This document shows, in pieces, positions 11,200 to 42,597 of a stretch of DNA of 64,000 nucleotides. Source of the stretch: Vitrella brassicaformis CCMP3155 (taxonomy: Eukaryota; Protista; Chromerida). Every line of letters starts with the position of its first letter. Position 1 is the first letter of the stretch. Location: contig CDMY01000255.1 in NCBI GenBank assembly GCA_001179505.1, forward strand, positions 434,001-498,000. Direction: 5' to 3'. Made by a program: the position numbers and the translations under genes. The notes under the pieces are model-generated. The model worked only from the letters and a program-made list of their open reading frames with translations. It was not told the origin of the DNA and did no database searches.

Positions 11200-13490
11200 C
11201 GCACGCGTCGGCCAGACAGACACAGAGCTGCAGTCATTCAACTTCACTCGCCCGTCGTTCTGTCCGTCGTGCCTGCCATGCCTACGTACGTCGTGCGCTG
11301 TACCATCCATCCATCCAATCAGTACGTATATAGCCAGTGATCGAGTAAGAAAGACACCTTGAAGCAAGGAACTGAGTGAGGGAGTGAGGCAGTCAGGTTA
11401 AAAGCGCAGTGTCATTCATTCATCATGATGTATGAGATAGACGAGAGACACAAACAAGAAGTGGCAAGCAAGCAGGCACATCCACACAGGCAGGCAGGCA
11501 GGCAGGCAGACAAACACATGACTCGACTCGTCGGGCTCTCCGCCTTTATGCCATCCAGCCCCCTCCCCACCCCTCCCCTCCCCTCAGCTGTTAGGTAGTG
11601 CGCCAGCCTCTCCCTCCCCCTCCCCGTCCCCCCTCTCTCTGTAAAAGTGTCTGTCACACATCAATCAACTAAACCACCGACAGAGTTGCCAGGACCATAC
11701 ATTCATTCACGGCCAATGGCTGGAAACACAACACCCTCACGCAATCATGCCGCTAGCTAGCTGTGGGTGTGTTCCCTCCCATAGTGGGTGGCCCTCTGCA
11801 TGAGCACAAAAGAGTGAGTGAGTTTTGAGCGAGCTAGCGAGTGGGAGACCTGTGTGTGTGGTAGTGATGAATTGAATTGTTAGCACTACTGGTAGAGTGG
11901 TCTGTCAGCGTGGGTGAGTTGGCGGCTTCCCGTGGTTGTGTTGGCGCACAAGGCTGTATGTATTTGATATTCTTATCAGTCAGTAAAGAAGTCAGGTTAG
12001 CTAAGGCAAGGCAGTCAGGTCAGGTCAGGTCAGGCAAGTCGATCGATCTGTCGGTTGGTTGGCTCGGAATGCACACACGTAGCACGGGTGCGTGCATGTC
12101 CGTTGGTCGCCTCTTCAGTCCACCAAACAGACACACACGCACATCACATACGCACACGTGCAACCCAACCAAGGCTAGGCTAGGCTAGACAGACAGACAG
12201 ACAGGCAGGAAGCGGAGCGGGGGAGCGAGTGGGAAGGTTTGCAATGCAGACATACATTCACAGCAAGCAAAGGAAAGTCACTCAGTCAGTCTGGCCATGA
12301 AAAAGAGCTGAGCCACTGGCAGGCAGGCAGGCAGGCAGGGCGGGCAGTCAGTCAGTCGTTGCGGGGTCCCCCTCCCTCCCTCCCTCATTCCACCACTCAC
12401 TCGGCCACACTACGCACCCACGCACATCCATCCATCCATCCACGCACACATGACACCCATCAGTCCGCCCCCTTGTGTCTCCCTCCCTCCCTCCCTCCCT
12501 CGGTCACCCGCTTTATGGTACACGAGCTCACCCACACCATACACACAATGCGTGCAATCAAACCAGGGAAGAGGAGGAGGAAGAGAAGGCAGTGGGACCA
12601 CTAGGCAGTCAGGAGGAGGCGAAGGGACGGACATACGCGAGTGACTGGGTGAGTGGGCGGTGGGTGCGTGTCTGTCTGTCTGTCTGTCATTGCTCGCTCT
12701 CTACGCATATAGCCATTGCATCAAAAACCTGTCTGCTCGCCTGCCTGCGTCTGGCAGGCAGGCAAGGCAGACACACATCGAGAGAGACAATCAGACGAAC
12801 AAGACTGACACCAACCAATGTTTGCCGCCTACCACCCACCCACCCACAGCCCCACCACACCCGCTCGCCACCCACCAATCACCTCCCCTCACCCAATCCA
12901 ATCAGTCAGCCCCCCCGCCCGCCAGGAAAACATCATGCCTGCGTATCGTATATGATGTCGATCGACGCATGCATGTACGCAGCAGTGTGCATTGATTGCA
13001 TTGCATTGTTGGTGGAATGGAAAGAAACATCCCTGCCTGTGCGAAAAGTCTAGAAAGAAAGAGAGACTCGGTGGGCAGGACAGGGCAGGGCAGGGGGGAG
13101 TGGGAGGTTCGGGGGTGTGGGGGTGGGATGGGGTCGGGAGGGGCCGGTAGGTGGGCATAGTGAGTGGCAGAGAGTCGACGAGCGAGCGAGCGAGCGATCC
13201 ATCTGTCCATCACACACGAACGAATCAATGGCTGGGTCAGGCATGCATCGGTCTGTCCTGTCCGCTTGCCCGTCGCCATACACACACGCGCACACGCGCA
13301 CATATCATACGCACGCACGCATGAATGGATGAATGGAGGAGAGGATGCACGCCACGCCCTGTGTGTCCTGTTTGTCTGTCTGCTGATCGGTCAACCGAGC
13401 AGCCGAGCAGCCGAGCAGTCAGTCAGTCAGTCAGGATCTCAGTCAGTATCAGTATTGTGTTGTGAATATGTGTGTGGGAAGCATCTGTCT
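11200..13490. repeat. Intergenic/UTR region dense in simple repeats ((CAGG)n, (CAGT)n, (CCCT)n, (CATC)n, (GTCAG)n)
   Basis: Direct reading; the ORF-track hits here are low-complexity. Confidence 0.7.
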
Positions 13491-13496
13491 GTGTGT

Positions 13497-15604
13497 CTAT
13501 GCCCGCGCCACTTCCTCCTCGTCGGACGCCTTGGGAAGCGCCCGCCTGTCCCGCTCGTCCGCCGTGTTGCGGCGGCGGTCCTTGTCATGGTGGTTTTGCT
13601 GACACACACATACACACACATCAACACACGCAGAGAGAGAGAGAGAGAGAGTGGGCGGTGTGTCGTCTCTCTCTGTGTTGTTTGTCTGTTTGCATGCTCA
13701 TTTACGTAGTTGAGTATGGTCCAGTCGAAGATGAAGTCGTATTGGTATCCCTCCCGGAAGAAGAGGTCCTTGAAGAGGCGGCGCAGGTAGGCGTAGTCCG
13801 GGCGGTCCTCAAAGCGCAGGCTGCGGCAGTAGTTCAAATACGTCATGAACTCGACTATTCAATGTATTACACACACACACACACATCAACACATCGACAC
13901 ATCAAACCATCAAACCATCAAACCAAACCACACAATACAAGACAAGACACACACATGCGCCGCACCGGCCTCTCGTGTGAGTGCTGCTGTGCTGTGCTGT
14001 GTGTGAGCATATCTATCATACATGGGAAGTGTTTGCAGAGTATTTCGATGGGCGTGGACATTTTCTTCTCCATGATCTTCTCGTACTTCTCCTTCTTGGA
14101 GTTGGCCTTGAGCCCCTGCCACGGCAGACACCCACGGTTGAAGTACATCAACACGTAACCCAACGCCTCCAAATCGTCGCTGAATGCATTACACACATAC
14201 CATACCATACCATACGCACACAACGCAATATGACACACATGTGTGATGTGGTGTCTGGCCGGTTGGTTGGTTGGTAGGTGTGGTTACTTACCGTCGCGAC
14301 TGTTCGATTCCGAGGTGTGTGTTGATGGATGCGTATCGAGCGGTGCCGGTGAGGTTCTTGTTTTCGCGGTAGGGGATGTGCTGCTGCGTCTTGGGGTCGC
14401 GGTACTTCTTGGCCAATCCGAAATCGATGATGTACACAACCTGAGCGATGGATGCGATGCGATGGGCCGATCGAATCGACGGACACACAACACACAACAC
14501 AACACACAAGCAGGGCAGACAGAGAGGGAGGGGAGGGGAGGGCCATGATGCTGATCTTGTCGTATCGTGTCTTCTGTGTATGTCCCTCCTCCTGTCTTTC
14601 GCTCTCTCACACAGGTACGTACCTGTGCCTTCTTGCCGAGTCCGATGAGGAAGTTGTCGGGCTTGATATCGCGATGGATGAAGTTCTTGGCGTGGATGTA
14701 CTCGATGCGGTTCAACTACACACACCAACACAAACATAACACAATAAATGAATAATACGCCAAACAATCGCGGGCCGGGCCGGCATGTGTGTGCGTGTGT
14801 GTGCGGTGTGTGGATGTGATGTATGTGGCCCATGTGATGTGTGTCCGCACCAACCATTTGGTCGGCGAGCATGAGTGCGGTTTTGAGTGAGAATTTGCGG
14901 TTGCAGAAGGTGAAGAGGTCCTCGAGGGAGGGGCCCAGGAGGTCAATCACCATCACGTTGTAGTCGCCCTCGATGCCGTACCAGTGAACCGTCGGAATGC
15001 CAACTGACACAGACAGACAGACAGGGGCATCACATCACACAGGGGGGGCTTCATCTTGCAAGCGTGTCCTGTGTGTGATGTGGCGGTAATGGCTTACCGC
15101 CGCCCGCGAGTATCTTATACAGTTTCGACTCATAGAGGAGCTGGGGGTGCTTGGACTTGATCGACTCCTGACGCGCACACACGCACACATACGGGTACAC
15201 CGAGACAGACAGACAGACAGACGCCACCAGACAAGCAAAACAACCAAATGAGCGACGCACGACCCCGGCAAACGAGGCATCGTACCCGTCCTCTCTCTGT
15301 GCAACCGTGGCTGTGTCCCGTCCTGTCTTTCATCGCTGCCTGGCGTGTGCGTGTCGCTTCACTAGGTCGGCCTTCTCTCACCAGTTTGATGGCCACCTCC
15401 TCTCCCGTAGCGATATTGGTTCCTGACAGACACGCCCAACACTCCATAGCCCCTCTCCCTCTGCACGTCGCTCCCCGCCTCCCTCCCTCCCTGGCCCATT
15501 AGCCCCAGTGTGTGTGTTCGGCTGTTACCGATATAGATGTCTCCGAATGAGCCGCCGCCGATCTTCCGGCCGAGGCGGTACTTGCCTCCCACGCGGACCT
15601 CCAT
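13497..15604 (-). CDS. CK1: Casein kinase 1
   Basis: [26 protein letters not shown]; [11 protein letters not shown]; [24 protein letters not shown]; [12 protein letters not shown]; [12 protein letters not shown]; [23 protein letters not shown]; [16 protein letters not shown]; [20 protein letters not shown]. Short tail ends EEEVARA*. Confidence 0.97.
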
Positions 15605-30519: not shown

Positions 30520-32712
30520 CAGCGGTCGGAGAGAGGCGTGGCTTGTCTAAGACACTGAGTGTATTGCGTGTGGGTGGGTGGCTGCGTGGATGGGATGGGG
30601 CGATCTGTATGTGTCGTTTGTCAAGTGAGACCGTGACTGACTTGACAGAGTCGGCCGGGGCGGGGCCTGTCTGTATGTCGGTCTGCCTGTCTGTGTGTCT
30701 GTGTGTATGCCTGTGTGTCTGTATGTCTGTATGTATGCCTGTCTGCGCGGACTCTCATTCATCTGCATCGTACGTATCGCTATGTATCGCTTCTTAATTG
30801 CTTCTTCCATCCACTGGGGCGTCTCGTTTTTGGTTCTTCCTTCGTGTGATGATGATGGGTGTGGTGTGTGTCGAGCGACCGACACACTGGGGGCTGAGCG
30901 TTGGCCGTCGGAACGGCATTGCGGGGCGCGGTGATGCCACCGAGATATTGGTGTGTGTGAATGGTTGGTTGCGTTTTGGCTGCGTGTGTGTGGGGCGGGC
31001 TGGGCTGGGCTGGTGAGACAGACGGTCGGTCGTATGTGTTCATTCGCATCTGAGCGGATCGGATGGACAGACAGTACAAAGATATTTATTTATTTATCGT
31101 TCGTATGAACGTACCTACAGCATTGCACTCATGGGATGGAGTGTGTAATCATCGCCACAACCAATCCACTCCAATCGATGTCCAGTTGTCTGTCCATTTA
31201 CTTACAGATAAAGTTGGCTACCTAGTCCCCTCCCTCCCTCTACACCCACCCACAACACCCCCAGCTAGCTACACTACCGCCTTACCGCCTGCGTGCCTCC
31301 TCTGCTGCCTACCTGCAGTGCCTGCCTCGCTAACACGATGTCCAAAATCGGCACGGCTTCGCTCACTCTACTCCGCTGACTCGACTGACTGCTATGACTT
31401 TTCTACGCGAGAAGACCACTTCCTCCCTCACCAATGGCTGGTTGGTTACCCATGTGTTTGTTGTACAGGACTCCTTGGCGGACACCACACACACCACAGA
31501 CACGCAAGCGCCCCTCACTCAACTCACCACAGCCGACACGCCGGGAACAGCATGCAAAACGGGCAGAGGGACGGGACGGGACGGGCGGATGGATGCGATG
31601 CGATGCGATTCACACACATGGATGGATGGATGGATCAACGGGTGTGTATGGTATGAAGGAAGGCACGACTCAATGAATGAATGAATCTAGATAGGTGCGG
31701 GATTTCTCAAATCGACGGGAGAAAGCACGAGAAGAAAGGCATCAGTAAAAATGCCACACACACACACGAACACACACATTCACACACAGAGGGAGAGAGA
31801 GAGTCTCTTGTTATGCATCATTACGTACGTACGTATCGGTGTGTGTATGTCAAGTACCAATTCCCCTCCCCCCCCCCCCCAACATGTTTGGGAGGGTCGG
31901 TCGGGACGCAGAGCGACAGCATCACGTCGGCTCGGCCCGCACGACAAAAAGCATCAAGCAGGGTCGCAAAGTGAGCCAACCCACTGTCCTGTCCTGTCTT
32001 TCCTGTCTTGTCAGTCGACTGTGTGTATGTCTACTGTACGCCGGTGTGTCTGTCTGCCTAGAGGAAAACCCGCCGACCCCGCCAACCTCCTTGCCTATAT
32101 CTGTTTGTAGTAGTACACTTCATTCGGGACACTCACATACATACAATGATGGATGGTCCTGCCTGCCTGCGCTATGTAATCAATGCCGTGCTGTGCGCGA
32201 CGTAAGAGCTGCCCGCATGACGGCCTCAAAACTGCAGACCAACTCACTCAGTCAATCAGTCAGTCACTCAGTCAGTCACGTACGTTGTGCTACATCCCTC
32301 GCCCACCCCACCACGGAACTCACCCCCCTTACAAGAAACGGCTTCCCGCTTGTTCCATCAAGATAGATAAATAGATAGATAGTCGGCCAACAGCGTCCGT
32401 CCGTCACGTACGCGTGGATCGGATCCACACACACATACATTCTCACCGTACGTACCGTCCATAGAAAACCATTGCATGACATGACATGCAACCAGGTAGA
32501 TAGAGAAATAGAGACAGAATAGGGTAGGATGGATAGGATTGTGTGTATGGTATGGTACACTCACTGATCATCCGTCTGAGAGTGGCGCAAGCAGGCAATC
32601 AATCACGGGGCGGGCCAGGGCAGATGGAGAGTCCCTAGCCAGCTTAAATCTCCCTACCGTCTGCGATCTCATTTCTACGTCCTCCCTGCCGCCCAATAAA
32701 TAGCCATGACGT

Positions 32713-32748
<36 letters not shown>

Positions 32749-32990
32749 TACGCATTTGTATGTATAACCCTTCCTACCGCCCCTCCCGATTCCCGCAGAT
32801 CCCTCCCGCCCTCCACTGCTAACCTCCTGTAATGCTACCACACGCACTCACGCCACCTAGACCCCTCCCGCCCTCCCCCTCCCAGACAGACAGACAGACA
32901 GACAGAACGGCCGCCGCAGAACGCCAAAAAAGTCGTGTCAGGCCAGGTGGTTGAGTGTCTATACTCCATTCATTCATCATGGATGTGTCA
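30520..32990. repeat. Intergenic region between convergent genes, rich in microsatellites ((CA)n, (GGAT)n, (GACA)n, (TAGA)n)
   Basis: Direct reading; no protein-like ORF. Confidence 0.65.
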
Positions 32991-32991
32991 G

Positions 32992-35900
32992 TCAGGGGAC
33001 TAGATAGGGGCCCTCAAATGCTCGCCGCACTTTGCTGAACGCCGACGCCGCATAGAAAATCTGGACGTACACGCAAAGCAAAGCGCCAACTAATGCGCGC
33101 GTCCTTCCTCGCCCCCTGGTCTTTGTGTCCGATAGATACGTACCTCTGCGAGTTGAGTGTTTGAGTTGACCACGTCGAATAGCAGTGGCAGCAGCCCCTT
33201 GCTGACTACCTCCACCTGCCGACACAGCAGCTCCTCCTTCATGCTCAACACCTCCATTGTCAGACCACTGTCACTGTCTCCGTCGCCCATGGCCCGCGGC
33301 GATCTTCCCAGGTCGGCCAGCACGGCCTGCAGGTCCGCCTGGGCACTACTCATACAAATCTCCCACCACCGGCTGCGCAGCTTGCGCACAAAACGGAGAA
33401 AGTCTCTCAGGTGGGGGCCGAAGGTTGTCGTCGTGGAGGCCTTCTTGGCTGTCTTCTGGCTCTGGATGAAGAGCACGGTGCGGTAGAGGTGCTGGCTCAC
33501 CACCTGCCGCCAGTCGAGGGGCATGACGCCACCCCCGCCGTCACAGCTGTCGTCCACTCGCTCCCGCACTTGCCGCAGCACGTCGCTTTGTGGCCTCGCC
33601 GCCCGCCCAGCACTGGACGCACTGGACGCCGTCGCTGATGTGGCAGCCATGTCTTTGTAGAGGACGGTGTAGACATACTCGAGGCAGTCCAGCCGCGTGA
33701 CACAGGGCCAGAAAAGGGGATGGTGCCGGCAGAGCTCGACAGGTGGTACAGCTCCGCTCCTCCGCCGCTTTTGCGTGTCGAGTTTGGGGGATGCGACGGT
33801 GCTGTGGTAGACGGCGTCAGGGGCCACCATGATATCGGTGGGTGAGCGGGACATGGTGAAGCCGCCAGCGGACACGGGTGAGGCCGTCGAGTGGTGGAGG
33901 AAGAGGCCGGTGCCAAGGGGAGTGGTGGCGCCCGTGCCGCTCTGCATGTCCATCGGGCCCGCCATGTCTGATAGATGTGTGAAGGGCGGGAGGCCGAGCA
34001 GCACCGCAATCAGCTGGTAGGCGAGCGGGCTGTACTCCCCGATGCACCGCAGCACCAGCCACGAGGGCCCCCCGTCTTCTGCGGTCCGCGCCAGAGCATC
34101 GACGGTGATGCGGCCACCCCCAGTCAGGCAGTAGACGAGCAGACACCCCAGCTGCTCTGCCGTGGAGGATGGCCATTCGTCTTTCGCCTCGTCGAGTGAG
34201 AAGATGTCCAGTCGCGGGCTGAGGGCAGCATCGCCGTTGCCGTCTACTGTTGCTGCGGCCATAAGGACGTTGTCGATGGTCATGGACCTCTGCAGTCGCT
34301 TCACCACCCCCTCCCACTCCTCATTCCTGAATGCCTCTCTCGTGGCCTCCCGCCGCAGACACTCCACCTCGCATGCCATGTCCATCAGGTCAGCCAGGAG
34401 GCTTCTGGTGTGTGGTGTGAGCTTCATGAGGCCCCTCACGCCGGCCTCCGCACACGCCCGTCTGAGTGAGGGGGGCAGTGCTGCTGCCGTCCTCTGGCGG
34501 CCGAGTGTTGGCGACTCTGCCCATGCACCGGTGCTGGTTGCCGGCGCAGATGAGTGAAGCTCGTCGGCTGGATGCTGCTGGAAGTGGTTGTCATGGCTGG
34601 CGGATTCAGGGCAAGGGAGTCCATCGCGGTCGATGTGCCACTCCCACAGGGCGTCGCAAAAGCACGTGAGCTTAGAGCCCTCGGGAGGCCCCCGGCAGCC
34701 CTCGATGAGGGTCTGGAGTGATGCCCGTGGAGGCGGGGTGAGACACAGCATGAGGGATGAATCGGGCGTCGGGCAGCTGGCAAGGTCCGTCGCTCTGCCT
34801 TGTGGCAGAACGGATGACGACGCCACTCGTGGGGCGATGGACGGGTGGAAGGACAGAGACACACATCGCAACGTGTGCCGGCCGTCCAACACCTGCTGCT
34901 GGCAGTGGAGTGAGTAGAGCTTGAGGAGGTCCTCTCCGAGCTGATAGTCTGCCAGTGCCCCGACTCGCACCGCACAGGGGACGCCCACCGTGGCGCGCCC
35001 GATGCCGCAGGGCAGCTCCACTTGCCCGAGGTGAAAGCCGTCCTTGAGATAGCGGACCCGGGACACTTGGACGCAGCTCGTTGAGGATGAATCTGTGCGG
35101 CAAGGAAACAAATAGAAATGGATATATCTCTCTCTTGTCCATGTCCATGCATACCTTGTTGGCCTGGACTGACAGTGTATCTCTCCTCCGCCCATGAACC
35201 GCTCGCCCCTTCCACCGCTCCCATCAGCGGTGGCCTAGGTGGCGTGGCCTCAGTCTCCTCCCGCGCGGCATAGCCACGTGCAGACGAGGGCGTGGAGAAC
35301 GACGACGTCGACGTGCCGAGCCGCATGCCCATCGACCCGGATGCGGGCCCCATCCACTGCACCGTCTGGGCGCTGTCGAACCCCTCCACAGTCCCAACTG
35401 ATGACGATCGTGGAAAAAGAGATGGCGATGAGTCTTCAGCACGATCCGAATCAGCCGCAGGTGATATGGCTGGGGACGCAATGACGAGTCGCAGCGGCTG
35501 CGGACGGCGTGTCGGGTGGACGTGGTGCGAGAGGAATGCTGCCGCCTCTTCACAGAGGTCGGCGGGACGTAGCCGCGCCCTCACTCGACGCGTCTTGTCC
35601 GCGCAGCTACCGATGAAGCCCTCATCCTCAGTCGGCTCCCACGTCATATCCACGCCGCCCTTCTGGCTTGCGGAGCTGCTGCCAGCGTCCACGCGCAGGA
35701 TGGCCGTCTTCCACGTGTCGAGGACCGACTTGCCCGGCAGATTGGTCGCGGCCTGCCAGCTGGGAAGAAATGACGCCATGGCTTTCGGCACAGACGGCGG
35801 CAGGGCGGCCGACAGGTTACTGAGGCTCTCCGAAACACAGACGTGGATGATGAAGAGGCTCCGGTCGTCCAGGCCGTCAAGCTGACATACAAACCACCCA

Positions 35901-38900
35901 ACAGGAAGGCAGACGGTGAGCAAGCGTTCTCTGGTGTTTCCACGGCACACTTACATGTATGGTTTGGTACTCCTGGAGGCTCTCAGCCAGGTGACCGCCA
36001 CTTGTGTGTAGATGCACCTGAACACGCGGAGAACACACATCAGCCTCGCATGACTGAGTTGCCTTCCCTATCTCCCCCGCTCGTACCAGCACGACTTGGT
36101 CACCGCGCCTCTTGTCATGGTTTTGCTTGGTGGGCTGCCCCTTGAGCCGCTGCGGCGTGCCGATCCACATGCCCCTCTCAGCCTCCACAAACCTCTCCCA
36201 CGATCCATGTCCGCAGGCCAGGAACAAATCAAACCTGTCTGCCATGAACGACAGCTCAGCGGGCAGGCACGACGACGGAGCCAACGACAGACGGACAGGC
36301 ACCAGGGAGTTGTCCAACAGCAGCACTGCCTGCACACACCACACCATTACACACAGCGAAGCGAATGCAATGCATCCATGTGTTGGTGCGGTGTGTGTAT
36401 CAATGTCAATCCGTACTTTGGGCATGTCGATGGCTTGGCACAGGCTGGCAACCGTCGCGAATGCATGGGAGAGGGAGTGTGCTTGCACAAACACGGCCGG
36501 GGCGGCTGCAAGAGATGGGGACTGATCCACCATGCCCTCGACCTCACCAAACACCCTGCGCACCACACCCATCACATCCGGCCGTCCGTCCGTCCATGTG
36601 TGCCCCCCACTCATACGTGGCTGATATATGCTACCTTCTCTGCTGTGTCTCGGCGCTGGCATCTGTTACTTCGGCCTGTGGACTCTGTGCGAGTGAGAAC
36701 ATGCCAAAACCGCCAGACGGACCGAACAGCTGACCCTGATCACACAGTCATCAACACAGTCATCAGCACAGAATCAATACACAGCGGCCGGCCGCAGCTC
36801 ACCGTTGATTGTTTCCTGCTGCTGTCTTCTCCTCCATCTGCTGATGCGGCGCTTCGCGTGGCACGACCCGAAGCAATGCCGTGGTGGTCGTGCTGATGGG
36901 ACCCCATGGGGCTGACGGACGAAGCGCCATCGGCCGCCGCTGTCGCCAGAGACCTCAACAGCCCCGCTGATGTGTGGTCGCCCTGGCCAGCATGAAGGTG
37001 CTGCATCGGTGTCAGCGAGAACAGAGATGAGCTCGCCTCTGATATGCCATGACACACACGAAAACAGACGACGGATCACATGAAGCGCCCGTGGTATCAA
37101 CGCGCCTCTTGGTTCCTTCTCATCTCACCTTCAGCCATGTTGTTGTGACTGGCAGTATCGTCGCCCTTGGCCTCCTCCGTGGCGGGCCTTTGCGGGAAGC
37201 TGTGGCTGGGGTGGATTGCCGGCGCTGGCAGCGCAGCCAAGTCTGCACCGTCACCCGGTACGTCGGCAGGGGTGGGTTGTGCGCTCAGCACAGCACTGTG
37301 GCTCGACCCTTGGCGCTTCGGCGCTGATGGAGACGTCGAGGGGATGGGCGCCCATGTGGACAGCGTGCTCTTGGTGCTGGACCCACCGCCGCCCCCTTCC
37401 CTGTTGCCATTTGCCATGGGAGACTCCACCAACGACACAGGCTCCATCTCTGCGATCTTGAGTCTGCTGGGCGGGGCCCACAGCTGCTTCTCAGACTTGC
37501 CCCAGATGTTGAGCAGGTCCTGCGGCACCGCTGCCCGCGTGATGCCCATGGGCGTGCCGTGCCGACCGCTGCTCGCCGTCTTGGGGCTCACCGCACCCAG
37601 CCTCGTTGCGTCACCGGGAACTGGTGGTGCTGGTGATGACGAAGGCGTGCCCACAGACGGTCGTTCGGTGAGGTGGTAGAGACGGGGGGCGGCATCGCTG
37701 GTGTCGCGGAGGGGCGTGTCGTCCTGCATGTGGATGTGGGGCCCTCTCCCAACATGCGATGTGTCATGGGGCGGTGCGATGAAGTGTTGCTGGGTTTGTC
37801 TTGGCCGCACGTCGGCGATGGTGAGGGATGAGTGCGGAGCTCTCATCGGTGAGAAGGCGTCCGTGTCGGTGTGGGATCGGGCAAACGTGTGGCTGGGGGA
37901 GTCCCTGGGCGTGAGGGGTGTGGGTCTCCATGCAGAGGGTGGCGGAGGGCCTGGTGGAGGGGGCGGCCTGCCACTGCCAGTGACGCTCTCAAATGGCACT
38001 GGCGGTGGGGGCGGGGGNNNNNNNNNNNNNNNNNNNNNNNNNNNNNNNNNNNNNNNNNNNNNNNNNNNNNNNNNNNNNNNNNNNNNNNNNNNNNNNNNNN
38101 NNNNNNNNNNNNNNNNNNNNNNNNNNNNNNNNNNNNNNNNNNNNNNNNNNNNNNNNNNNNNNNNNNNNNNNNNNNNNNNNNNNNNNNNNNNNNNNNNNNN
38201 NNNNNNNNNNNNNNNNNNNNNNNNNNNNNNNNNNNNNNNNNNNNNNNNNNNNNNNNNNNNNNNNNNNNNNNNNNNNNNNNNNNNNNNNNNNNNNNNNNNN
38301 NNNNNNNNNNNNNNNNNGGGGGGGGGGGGGGGGGGGGGGGGGTGGTGGCAGGACGCCTCCGTGATGCTGCGGTGTGTGCGCGGGGGCGGGGATCATGGAG
38401 TCCTCTCGCCGCACTGGGCTGCGGACGATGCAACTCAGAATGGGCGACCCAGTCTCACCCCTGCATTCACGCATACAGCCAGCCACAACAAGGATGGACA
38501 TGTCTTGTGTGGACTTCTGCATGCATTCGTTACCGTATAGAGGGCGATGGCTGTGTGATGTTTTCGGGGTCCTCCAGGTTGAAGAGGATGGGCTTCGTCA
38601 CGTGCGTCTGCAGTTTGTCGATCGATGCGAGTGGTTTGGTGTAGTCGAAGTTGGTGGCGGGCGGGTAGCGCTTCTGAGACGCGTCGTGGTAGAACGCACA
38701 CAAATCACCGCGCGGGCACCACCCTGACACAAGAATAAAGACAATGGGAGAAGTGGGCGAGTTGGATAGTCAGTCGATGCATGGCTGGCTGGACGGATCG
38801 ATACCGTTGGCCTTCCAGTCGGCGCACGGCATGACCTTGTAGTAGCTGGGGTGGTACAGCTGCTCCTTGCTCCCGTGCGCATACTGGCAGTAAAACCTGC

Positions 38901-41900
38901 AGCACACAGAAACGCATAGCTCATCGATTAATGTGTCAGTGACACGCTGCCTGGCATAGACACATACCCCTTGTTAGGGCATCTCTGTTCGTAGTCGAGG
39001 GCGTGCGCGTGTTTGTCCTTGTCCTTCTCCCAGTACGGACACGGTTCAGAGCCATAACTAAACACACGACATGACATGATGCAATGCACGCGGTACGGTG
39101 TTCATGCCATGCGGTGGTGTGTGGGTGCAGTGCAGTGCAGGTCGGTGCGGTGCGGTGGGTACCCTACCCCAGCTCAGGTGTCCGTCTGAAGTCTTGGTAT
39201 GTGTGTGCGTACACGCAGCTGTGCCAGTCGTGCTGGATGCCGTACGGACACCACTTGGTCTTGAACTTGGACATAAAAAAGTCGGCCTGACCATACATAC
39301 GCACACGGGCGAACAGGAGTTGGGTGTGGTGTGTTTGTTGGTGTGTGCGGTGGGTGTGGCGAGAACACACCGTTCGTTCGGACTCTTCCTCGGGGCTGAA
39401 TATTGGGCATCGGATCTCCTCACGGCTGTGGGCAAACGCACAAAACTTCCCACGCTGACAGCGCTGCACACGCACAACACACATTTTCACTCCCCTGTGG
39501 ATTGGTCGGCCCAGTGTGGTCTGTGTGGTCTGTGTGGTCTGTTTACTTACCGACACGTCGGGGTACGTCGCGCAGAATCTCTGTTTGTAGACCTCAGGGT
39601 GGTAGAGCAGCTCCAGACGATTGTGACACTTATCGCACGCGTCGCCCTTCTTGCACGCGAGGCTCTGTAGCTCCAGGTCAAAATGGTCCTCACACGGCTC
39701 AGCCTTGTACTGTCCAAATGGCGGCCTCCGTCTGTCTCGCAGGTTGTGGTAGAACGGGCATATCTTCCTGTCGTGCGCGTGGGCCTTGTTCCGACACGGC
39801 TGCGTCTTGAAGTGAGCAAAAGAGAAGTCGGCAGCTGCACTCGCACCCTTGACTGCCAGGGCATCCTGCGTAGTCCCCTGTGTGCGGGTGGACGGCGGGG
39901 GACTCCTGTCGCTGCGCGCGTTCGCGCGATTCGCCGCACCGCTCAAGATCAAATGCGAGTAGCGAGACTGCACGCACCAAAGGCCACCCAGTGGACACAC
40001 ACGTGTGGACGAAATGTCATCAGCTGCACATGTCATGTGGTTGTTTGCTGAAAGTTACCTGTGCGAATCGTCTGAGCTCGTGTTCCTCGTGTGCGAAGCA
40101 GCAGATTTGCTTCCTGCAGTCCTTGGAGTTGCAGAGGCGCGTCTTGTACTTGGCCGGGTGGTAAGAGATCTCGTCCTTCGAATGCGCAAACGGACACGAC
40201 AGACCTCTGACGGTTAGAGACGACCAACACAAACAGAGAGGACAGCAATCAGTGAGAGACGAGTGAGTGCGTTTGTCGGTCGTTGAATGTGTTGGTTGCG
40301 TGACTGACTGACTCACCTCGGGCAGTTGTTTGGGTGGTTGATGAACTCGCACTGGATGTCCCAGTAGGCCAGACGCTTCGACTCAGTGATGGGACGACGA
40401 CCTGACGCACACACATGGGTGGGTGGGTGCCACGCATGACATGACGCTCAGTGCACTTGGTGCGTACGTTTCTGCGAGTCAAAATGGAAGTCGAAGCACA
40501 CCATTGGCTTGTGGGCGGGACAGTGACCCTGACCGAACCGAGGACTGATGAATGGACAAACAATCAAACAATCAAACAACCAGGCAAACAGGGAAACAAG
40601 AAAGCAGAAGCAGTGAGTGAGTGACTCACAAGCGATCACATGTGCGACTGTCTCGCTGTGCTTCGTTCACTGACTGCCTGATTGTCTGTCTGACTGACCA
40701 TTTCCTGGTGTGGCAGTTGAACATGAAGTGCATGTGCTCCTCGTTCTCTCCCAACTCACGGAACATCGGCAGCTCGGGTCCCTGGCCCTCTGGCATCTCA
40801 ACCCTACCCCCAATCCCAATCCCAACCACCACACCGGACCGACCTGCACCCTCACCACCACGCCGACTGCCCCGCGGCGACCCATCGTCTGACGCCGCCC
40901 TCTGGCCCTCACCTTGACGCACCATCGGTGAAGGATTGCTGCTCCCACCGGTGGTCTGTGTCACTGTGGTGGCTGCCTGCTGCTGCTGCTGCTGCTGCTG
41001 GTGACTGCCCGGTTGTTGCTGTTGCTGCTGCATGATGGTGTTGATGGCTTGTTGCAGCTGCAGCAGCTGGTACTGCTGCAAAGAGGCGTTGCCGACCCCG
41101 CCATTGGACACCTGCTGCACTGACGGCGATGGAGAGGGCGAGGGCGACAGACGGTTGAGCAGCCCCAGGCTCGCCGCCTGGTTCTGCAGCAGGGAGAGCG
41201 CATTGGGAGTGGCGGGCTGCGGCTGCTTCGGGTGCTGCTGTTGCTGCTGCTGCTGCTGCATCCGCCTGAGCGCACCGGCAAGGTTGACCAGATCAGCAGT
41301 GGTGTCGTCCGACGACGACAGTGCGGCGTCAGATGCGGCGGCAGTGGGGGTCTTGGACACGGGCCGCTGCTGCCGCTGCTGTGGCGTGATGTCGGTCTTG
41401 TGATCGTGCAGCCGCTGCACCGTCGCCCCTCGATGGTTGGCGAAGAGGACGTCCCCATACGACTGCGGCCGTGTGAGGTCATTGGCGCTCCTGTGCGGGG
41501 TGCCAATCGCTTCAGTGCTCTGCGGTGAGATGTCGGTGAACCGCTCGCCGATGATGTCCTTGGGAGACGATTCGGCCTCAATCGATGGTGCTCTGGGGGT
41601 GGTCTGAGGGCCATGCGGTTGGGGCCTGAAGGCGGCCTGGTGGAGGGGAGTGGCAGAGGGAGTGACGGACTCCCTCGATGTGGCCGGCACTTGCTGTTGC
41701 TGTTGCGTCAGCTGCACGAGGGCTGCGGCCACATGGGTCGGGAGCTGAGATAACACAGCCGCCGAGGGGGGAGGGATGGGGCCGACCAAGGACGCGCCGT
41801 CAGCAGCAGCCCCACCAGATGATAACACGGTTGAGGCCTGCCCTGGCGCCAGCGATGAGTGTCCGTTGGGCAGGGTGCCGATGGGTCGACTTGGCTCGTG

Positions 41901-42149
41901 GGGCGAGATGCTCGTGTGGTTCATGAGGGACGCGGGGGAGGTCGATGTGCCCCCCACGAGGGACTGCTGGTGGGCGGCTGCCGAAGCGTGCGGCGTCATG
42001 AGGCCCGTGCGGGAGGAGGTCTCACGAAGTCGGTTGAGCTTGAGAGAATCCGAAAGCCGCACCTCCCCTCCGTTCTGCCGCGCGTCGGCGTGTGGGTGCC
42101 TTGCCGTTGCTGCCTCAGAGAGGCCTCCTAGATGCTGGTCAGCACGCAT
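32992..42149 (-). CDS. Large multidomain protein: Q-rich N-terminus, 9 Unkempt-like CCCH zinc fingers, poly-Pro linker, IRE1/RNase L-like pseudokinase and degenerate KEN domain (spans gap 38018-38317)
   Basis: The exon junctions I checked are phase-consistent from ATG 42149 to TGA 32992; both gap flanks read as poly-Pro. Fingers include FKTKWCPYGIQHDWHSCVYAH, YHPSYYKVMPC and CQRGKFCAFAH. The C-terminus has DIFSL..GCLLVYCLTGG, HPLFW, DW and RDFLRFVRK, matching IRE1-family hallmarks. Confidence 0.75.
38018..38317. other. Assembly gap (300 N) inside a G/C homopolymer encoding poly-Pro
   Basis: The N run is flanked by gcggggg on the left and a G-run of over 20 nt on the right. Confidence 1.
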
Positions 42150-42597
42150 CAGCGCCACAACGGATCGATGATGAATCTTGTTTGTGCTGCCCTTTCCGGC
42201 TGTCAGTGGCCTTCACCCGCCGGCCTCAGCCCCATGAAGGGCAGCCACATGGTCATGTGCCGCTGTTGCCTCCGAGACATGCCGGAGTGTGATGCTGCGC
42301 ATGGGCTGCTTGCGGTGCCAGATCTCGACTCGCGCCTCTCTCACTTCGACCTGTGTGGCGTTCTGCTGCCACTCAACGCTGAAAACAGCCTGTTTTCCGG
42401 ATCTTATCTGCGAGCTACTGAGTGGATCGACCGCGGCCAGGGGACAGAACCAAGCGGCAGCATGACAATCGGGCATCACATGCATCTCACATTCACCGCC
42501 GAAAACACGCCACTTCAACGGAACCCATGCTGCCCTGCAGATCTATCCGCTATGCATCTTCCGTCTAGCTATCGACGTCTCCACCAGTGAGTGTGTG

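Follow-up and report, generated by a model that had tools for sequence, protein, structure and literature searches.

A Vitrella brassicaformis gene that places an Unkempt-type CCCH finger array ahead of a probable, strongly diverged kinase-KEN remnant

IRE1 and RNase L are stress sensors, and in both a kinase-KEN module is known as the output end. Does a third context for this module exist, with an RNA-binding array as its input end? The question is raised by a minus-strand locus at positions 32992 to 42149 of a 64,000-nucleotide (nt) stretch of the Vitrella brassicaformis CCMP3155 genome (GenBank assembly GCA_001179505.1, contig CDMY01000255.1, positions 434,001 to 498,000 of the forward strand; hereafter the window). 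A first-pass annotation had read the locus as an array of Unkempt-type CCCH fingers fused to an IRE1/RNase L-like kinase-KEN module and had proposed it as an undescribed RNA-regulatory system. The locus is a real, expressed nuclear gene with a soluble product of about 2,430 amino acids (aa). The product is probably a multivalent RNA-binding regulator that combines nine Unkempt-like fingers, long glutamine- and proline-rich disordered stretches and a strongly diverged kinase-KEN remnant. The proposal also leaned on the absence of the IRE1 branch from apicomplexans. Apicomplexan parasites are said to lack IRE1; the premise is doubtful here, where the source appears to be a photosynthetic alveolate alga.

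The gene model was drawn from contigs of public sequencing runs. Run X4 is taken as RNA-derived because its contigs are spliced; runs X2, X3 and X5 have unspliced contigs and are taken as genomic. Spliced X4 contigs define 18 introns of 62-154 nt on the minus strand between ATG 42149 and TGA 32992-32994, the last of them shown independently by run X1, and all 18 are bounded by GT..AG on that strand once the stated shifts of the cuts are applied. Exon phases are consistent over the joined exons. An in-frame stop lies near 42213 and ATG 42149 is the first ATG that follows it; from there the frame is open up to an assembly gap, and downstream of the gap the originally proposed frame continues to TGA 32992. 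The claim of one spliced minus-strand frame with consistent phases from ATG 42149 to TGA 32992 is borne out by the GT-AG introns and the RNA contigs.

32992-42149, minus strand: whole coding region, 19 exons with the gap inside exon 11, about 2,433 aa.
42149-40699, 40544-40468, 40401-40317, 40206-40059 and 39967-39551, minus strand: exons 1-5 in 5' to 3' order, from spliced RNA contigs.
39463-39371, 39286-39168, 39057-38968, 38896-38805 and 38723-38534, minus strand: exons 6-10, from spliced RNA contigs.
38460-[gap]-37129, 37038-36803, 36735-36635, 36555-36417 and 36329-36087, minus strand: exons 11-15, from spliced RNA contigs.
36017-35955, 35881-35155, 35092-33144 and 33060-32992, minus strand: exons 16-19, from spliced RNA contigs.

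A 3,720-letter RNA contig covers 41427-42300 and extends about 2.8 kb further upstream, at a mean depth of 30 versus 4-11 across the remaining gene. It represents either a long 5' untranslated region or upstream exons, or else an overlapping neighbouring transcript; with this contig running on past 42300, ATG 42149 is a provisional start. Within the finger array, one minus-strand intron (39287-39370) measures 84 nt and another (39464-39550) 87 nt. Because both lengths are divisible by three and neither intron holds an in-frame stop, open reading frame (ORF) 39164-40036 reads through the pair; their retention would preserve the frame and add 28-29 residues between fingers. Many acceptor AGs are preceded by TG-rich tracts instead of plain pyrimidine tracts. 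Directly past the stop codon lie (CA)n repeats at 32706-32752 and 32867-32916, and no Rfam match was found across the window.

The amino-terminal part of the protein was assigned by comparison with structures, families and finger patterns.

40716-42149, minus strand: amino-terminal low-complexity region, Q/S/P-rich, aa 1-478, with GCT/CAG repeats and no Pfam family.
38686-40715, minus strand: nine CCCH fingers in three Unkempt-like three-finger clusters, spread over 10 exons, from PDB 5ELK, Pfam and finger patterns.

The clusters occupy aa 479-577, about 640-738 and about 758-870, and the array as a whole aa 479-870. The sole PDB match of exon 39551-39967 is 5ELK_A, the ZnF4-6 fingers of mouse Unkempt (E = 3.4e-14, 56.5 bits over 85 residues). 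The Pfam family zf-CCCH_AtC3H23 matches two exons at 53.3 and 30.8 bits against a cut-off of 27. UNK-specific Pfam models reach 14-22 bits on exon fragments, under their cut-offs, partly because the fingers are split across exons. The 5ELK match, the AtC3H23 family and the nine finger patterns confirm, at the level of sequence, the Unkempt-type array that had been claimed, with three-finger clusters homologous to those of Unkempt.

Two regions separate the array from the carboxyl-terminal module.

36635-38017, minus strand: linker, P/S/A-rich, aa about 963-1370, with no recognisable domain and no Pfam family.
35155-36555, minus strand: middle region with hydrophobic patterning, aa about 1372-1760, with no Pfam family on its two largest exons.

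No RING family was found on the exons scanned with Pfam, a scan that covered the exons other than several short ones (under about 50 aa) and exon 37038-36803 (78 aa), and ankyrin and lumenal-domain families were likewise absent from the scanned exons. The protein had been described as free of a signal peptide and a transmembrane helix. Neither is seen; its best 19-residue Kyte-Doolittle window scores 1.48 and is not of transmembrane grade.

The carboxyl-terminal exon (35092-33144, 649 aa) was compared with a reference set of IRE1 sequences. A degenerate DNA pattern that represents the KEN motif DLLRxxRNKxxH[YF]x[DE]LP served to scan metagenome contigs, the surrounding frames were translated and 29 non-redundant kinase-KEN segments were kept, 29/29 with Pkinase and Ribonuc_2-5A (PF06479) by Pfam. 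A hidden Markov model (HMM) of this set scores the query at 5.0 bits (P = 4e-4), a value reached by 1/3,000 global shuffles and 1/3,000 window shuffles. Profile alignment with hhalign gave three collinear matches. Query residues 281-371 align with kinase helices αF-αH (P = 5e-5, probability about 67.5%, reproduced by a second comparison), residues 445-472 with the last part of the kinase plus the HPxFW helix (P = 0.006) and residues 560-580 with the RDLLRxxRNK helix (P = 0.08). The null set consisted of 120 real but unrelated ORFs and 80 shuffles; its highest single score is 28.1, versus 45.0 for the query, and the best collinear chain among its 200 sequences scores 47.2, versus 96.4 for the query. 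Gumbel estimates are 3e-5 for the best match and about 3e-10 for the chain, the latter from a rough fit. An HMM of the KEN domain alone scores the query at 3.9 bits and ranks it first among about 790 non-IRE1 decoys. The best phmmer match to 120 fetched IRE1-type reading frames, some of them fragments only, has E = 2e-4. These comparisons define the following features.

33984-34256, minus strand: IRE1-type kinase C-lobe remnant (αF to αH), with DIFSL, a 15-aa insert, LGCLLVYCLTGGG and PLAYQLIAVLL, from hhalign.
32995-33764, minus strand: KEN-like helical domain with inserts, interrupted by the intron 33061-33143, from the second and third hhalign matches and the KEN HMM.
33705-33725, minus strand: HHPLFWP, motif of the KEN-like domain.
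33504-33518, minus strand: LDW, motif of the KEN-like domain.
33369-33407, minus strand: RDFLRFVRKLRSR, motif of the KEN-like domain.

LGRSP and LLPLLF are further motifs of the KEN-like domain. In the αF helix, LGCLLVYCLTGGG agrees at 12/13 positions with LGCLLHYCLTGGG of one IRE1 subgroup (loci L064, L019 and L119). Among the untargeted searches, leads came from a protein-language-model Atlas alone: the whole exon retrieved plant 'kinase-like' clusters (score 0.92, 198 shared features), the models of which match IRE1 kinase and KEN, and the first-ranked cluster for aa 470-649 carries PF06479 (score 0.84). Exon 35156-35881 of the middle region, which served as a control, reached a best score of only 0.45.

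The kinase part is recognised at its carboxyl-terminal end; the N-lobe and catalytic loop are undetectable by sequence in this exon.

34257-35092, minus strand: first about 280 aa of the large exon, the expected place of the kinase N-lobe, hinge and catalytic loop, with candidate remnants that have no statistical support.

The candidates are PCAVRV, SLQTLIE, IDRDGLP and TIDNVLM. Two pairings with the IRE1 catalytic loop were considered, and neither was adopted as evidence. IDNVL as the counterpart of HRDLKPxN is the best match in the first 285 aa, yet its score of 13.5 falls below that of shuffles. MAFFT places the candidates sensibly in E-INS-i mode only, where PCAVR falls opposite PVAVK and IDRDGLP opposite IHRDLKP while a DFG is missing; L-INS-i disagrees, and the IDRDGLP pairing varies with the mode. 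An HMM of the kinase alone was also set aside as not discriminating. Among its decoys was ORF 14291-15034 (minus strand), which by eye is casein kinase 1 (CK1)-like (GPSLEDLF, TGTARYAS) and evidently represents at least one exon of a CK1 gene. The motif list of the first-pass annotation divides along the same line. All of its strings lie where they were placed; DIFSL..GCLLVYCLTGG..PLAYQLIAVLL, HPLFW and RDFLRFVRK beat chance, and SLQTLIE and IDNVL are at noise level. Its kinase-KEN claim holds for the kinase C-lobe helices and the KEN, by the hhalign chain, the IRE1 HMM and the KEN-HMM rank, and is unsupported for a full kinase domain.

Several results weigh against homology of this exon to the IRE1 module. 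Within the kinase, the hhalign comparison of the first 285 aa with IRE1 is at noise level (score 13.5, under shuffles), a spurious low-complexity ORF at 13466-14155 outscores the query in the kinase-only HMM, and the 15-aa insert interrupts the start of helix αF. Blind searches with the exon were empty. Pfam returned no family even at E <= 10, including the Pkinase (PF00069/PF07714) and Ribonuc_2-5A (PF06479) profiles with which the annotation had proposed to check its claim. A phmmer search of 1.84 billion cluster representatives was blank, and PDB searches by phmmer with the whole exon and three pieces gave chance matches only (GGDEF, designed TIM barrels, SDR and ribosomal protein L1). A word-index protein search, the length window of which excludes 2,400-aa proteins, was blank as well, and back-translated peptides of the exon matched no metagenome locus; in the searches made, no relative was found outside this genome. 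The structural check that had been proposed, AlphaFold with Foldseek, gave no independent confirmation. AlphaFold2 on the single sequence yields a mean predicted local distance difference test (pLDDT) of 36.9, which is unusable, with low-confidence β-strands and then helices in the first ~280 aa. Guidance by the IRE1 alignment raises the pLDDT to 57.5, and to 78-83 over the KEN core, in a model that is circular by construction. IRE1 and RNase L account for all of the top 23 Foldseek matches of the guided model, but the matches are weak (E 0.3-2, TM-score about 0.25) and share the circularity; model and matches were excluded from the evidence for the fold. The Atlas recognition value of 2092 for the whole exon is under the level where its scores mean much. 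The directed P-values overstate significance because IRE1 was chosen after the motifs had been seen.

These results bear on the alternative that the likeness to IRE1 and RNase L is due to chance or convergence and that the exon encodes a lineage-specific, largely helical, disordered and unrelated domain. Every blind search is without a match, the structure test is weak, the Atlas value is too low, the hypothesis arose after inspection of motifs and the likeness comes down to three short blocks, each with 13-28 well-matched residues, all of which this alternative would explain. It does not explain that the blocks are collinear and coincide with the three most conserved blocks of IRE1, that their chain score is double the best of 200 null sequences, that the αF helix agrees so closely with a single IRE1 subgroup, or that two separate Atlas queries lead to the same families and the control exon to nothing. 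A chance or convergent likeness is unlikely on this balance. With a heavy discount for the post-hoc choice included, we hold with good confidence that the end of the C-lobe and the KEN-like domain are homologous to the IRE1/RNase L module.

Whether this remnant and the finger array belong to the same protein depends on the assembly gap. A second alternative places two genes here, with the end of the CCCH-finger gene and the start of a separate pseudokinase-KEN gene both inside the gap.

38018-38357, no strand: assembly gap of 300 N (38018-38317), a run of 25 G (G25) and 15 more letters, with poly-Pro codons on both sides.

Read literally, 340 letters (the 300 N and the 40 letters of 38318-38357) separate 38358 from 38017, which puts the downstream half one base out of frame and places a stop after 8 codons. 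One X2 contig, taken as genomic because it is unspliced, has 16,652 letters and aligns with both 37500-38017 and 38358-42300, leaving 21 letters for the stretch in between (position 11490 of its record maps to 38358 and 11512 to 38017). With 21 letters across the gap, the frame is open end to end and encodes 2,433 aa; among the lengths of 19-23 letters tried, 19, 20, 22 and 23 give no single open frame. A frame fit at 21 letters is expected by chance one time in three. The earlier statement that the gap is the only break agrees with the poly-Pro on both flanks and the open frame obtained with 21 letters, and disagrees with the halves as assembled, which are out of frame. The G25 run next to the gap is not reproduced in the bridging contig, which has 21 letters versus the 40 letters and 300 N of the window; either the run is an assembly artefact or the bridging contig collapsed.

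A boundary between two genes would account for the frame break as assembled and for the RNA data, in which contigs come up to the gap on either side (as far as 38017+6 and about 38373) and none crosses 38018-38372. Only one DNA contig bridges the gap, a de Bruijn contig that passes through a G-rich low-complexity tract and may be collapsed. Both observations count against a single gene. On the other side, 21 letters leave no room for a terminator plus a promoter, and the frame across them is exact. On each flank the frame stays open, with poly-Pro codons, right to the edge of the gap, the RNA contigs that come as near as about 6 and about 15 letters to the tract 38018-38357 have similar depths (8.8 and 11.4), and close to the gap the downstream half lacks a start codon context that could serve it alone. 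Two genes are distinctly unlikely, and with high confidence the CCCH half and the carboxyl-terminal half form a single gene.

The annotation had cast the fusion as an RNA-regulatory system, which as a regulated nuclease is unlikely given the loss of the catalytic residues of the KEN. Alignment A2 shows A, K, L and R in the query at the columns where the Y...RNKxxH block has its nearly invariant Y, N, K and H. The arginine is the only residue of the catalytic set that is kept. The HEPN motif Rx4-6H, the histidine of which is essential in RNase L (PMC3710099), is broken because this histidine is replaced and none follows 4-6 residues after the arginine. With these residues lost, nuclease activity of the KEN-like domain is unlikely. 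A scheme in which RNA binding by the finger array drives self-association of the remnant and then cleavage, through non-canonical residues or in a heterodimer with an intact paralogue, would be very improbable; if it were true, the finger array in the sensor's place would make the protein an RNA-gated counterpart of RNase L outside animals. That the KEN-like domain itself is still an endonuclease, switched on by finger-bound RNA as an RNA-sensing analogue of RNase L and cutting through non-canonical residues, is less probable again. The order of sensor, pseudokinase and KEN does parallel RNase L, the conserved arginine of RNKxxH is retained and genuine algal IRE1s combine an intact KEN with CCCH fingers. 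The catalytic Tyr, Asn and His have nevertheless become Ala, Lys and Arg, the spacing to a histidine is lost and HEPN domains that lack the motif are treated as non-catalytic binders in the HEPN survey (PMC3710099).

The last alternative, a CCCH-bearing deadenylase adaptor with a PAN3-like pseudokinase and carboxyl-terminal knob, has next to no probability and was set aside on the Pfam and Atlas results: PAN3 does unite a CCCH finger with a pseudokinase (PMC4158885), and several Pan3_CK Atlas clusters score 0.89-0.90 with 165-172 shared features, but Pfam Pan3_CK (PF18101) has no match and for aa 470-649 the Pan3 cluster scores 0.48 versus 0.84 for PF06479. The supported motifs HPLFW and RDxLRxxR are typical of KEN, and we know of neither in PAN3.

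A regulator with nine fingers and a diverged kinase-KEN remnant is the preferred reading, and a working scheme can be put forward for it. By analogy with the Unkempt clusters, the finger clusters would read short single-stranded RNA motifs. The dead kinase-KEN remnant would provide a surface for dimerisation or oligomerisation, or a non-catalytic surface that binds RNA or a partner; it may retain the part that the module plays in the self-association of IRE1 and RNase L. On this scheme the protein is a post-transcriptional regulator of mRNA translation, stability or granule assembly, not a regulated endonuclease. A regulator role with a self-associating or binding tail is the most likely one, and it has against it that we infer the function throughout.

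Known systems show which parts of this arrangement have precedents. Unkempt and the plant AtC3H23/TZF proteins have three-finger CCCH clusters of the same type. The query carries three clusters (nine fingers) where Unkempt has two, and it ends in an IRE1-like remnant; among the scanned exons neither a RING nor a coiled-coil tail was found. The likeness to PAN3, an Atlas lead only, consists of a CCCH finger, a pseudokinase and a helical carboxyl-terminal domain; the query differs in having no Pan3_CK match and KEN-type motifs closer to IRE1.

RNase L is likewise soluble, with an amino-terminal ligand-binding repeat array, a pseudokinase and a KEN, and its chains are among the Foldseek matches of the guided model. 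The repeats of RNase L are ankyrins that bind 2-5A, whereas those of the query are CCCH fingers; its KEN active site is kept, whereas that of the query is lost; and the fingers of the query lie over 900 aa away from its module, across a linker and unassigned sequence. The query and IRE1 are collinear over αF-αH, the KEN-opening HPxFW helix, the DW block, the RDLLRxxR helix and the LGxxP and PxLL blocks. Unlike IRE1, the query has no lumenal sensor, transmembrane helix or signal peptide, no Pfam match to Pkinase or PF06479 and no recognisable N-lobe, HRD or DFG; the Y, N and H of its KEN are lost and it contains large low-complexity inserts.

The pairing of KEN with CCCH fingers is not new, because it has a one-line table entry in the 2013 HEPN survey, where CCCH is listed for KEN 'in some' (PMC3710099), and because IRE1 loci that bear CCCH fingers are at hand. 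Canonical IRE1 genes of this kind were found at L064:4730-8236 (plus strand), L068, L022, L027, L055 and about 45 further loci. The metagenome contigs that carry these genes have a high GC content and are largely of marine origin. The genes encode a signal peptide, a lumenal domain and an intact kinase and KEN, with one or two ordinary C-x8-C-x5-C-x3-H fingers immediately behind the KEN, and are probably the 'CCCH in some' of the survey. In the literature searched on the CCCH and kinase-KEN architecture, that table entry was the only mention found, and its supplement held nothing more. The claim of an undescribed architecture is narrowed by these precedents: the pairing was known already, and the present arrangement, an amino-terminal ninefold Unkempt-type array, no membrane sensor and a decayed kinase-KEN module, was not found in the literature searched. 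The domain combination is unusual; a new RNA-cutting system is improbable.

The algal-type CCCH IRE1s share with the query both kinase-KEN and CCCH fingers in one polypeptide, and the L064 group is its best single-sequence match. Their modules are intact and their fingers trail the KEN; in the query the fingers are amino-terminal, Unkempt-type and ninefold and the module is degenerate. The gene suggests a third context for kinase-KEN, soluble, with a zinc-finger array as input end and a decayed, probable pseudo-enzyme as output end. It would add to the wider picture of dead enzymes re-used as scaffolds, and to a recurrent pairing of KEN with CCCH fingers that is present in genuine algal IRE1s too.

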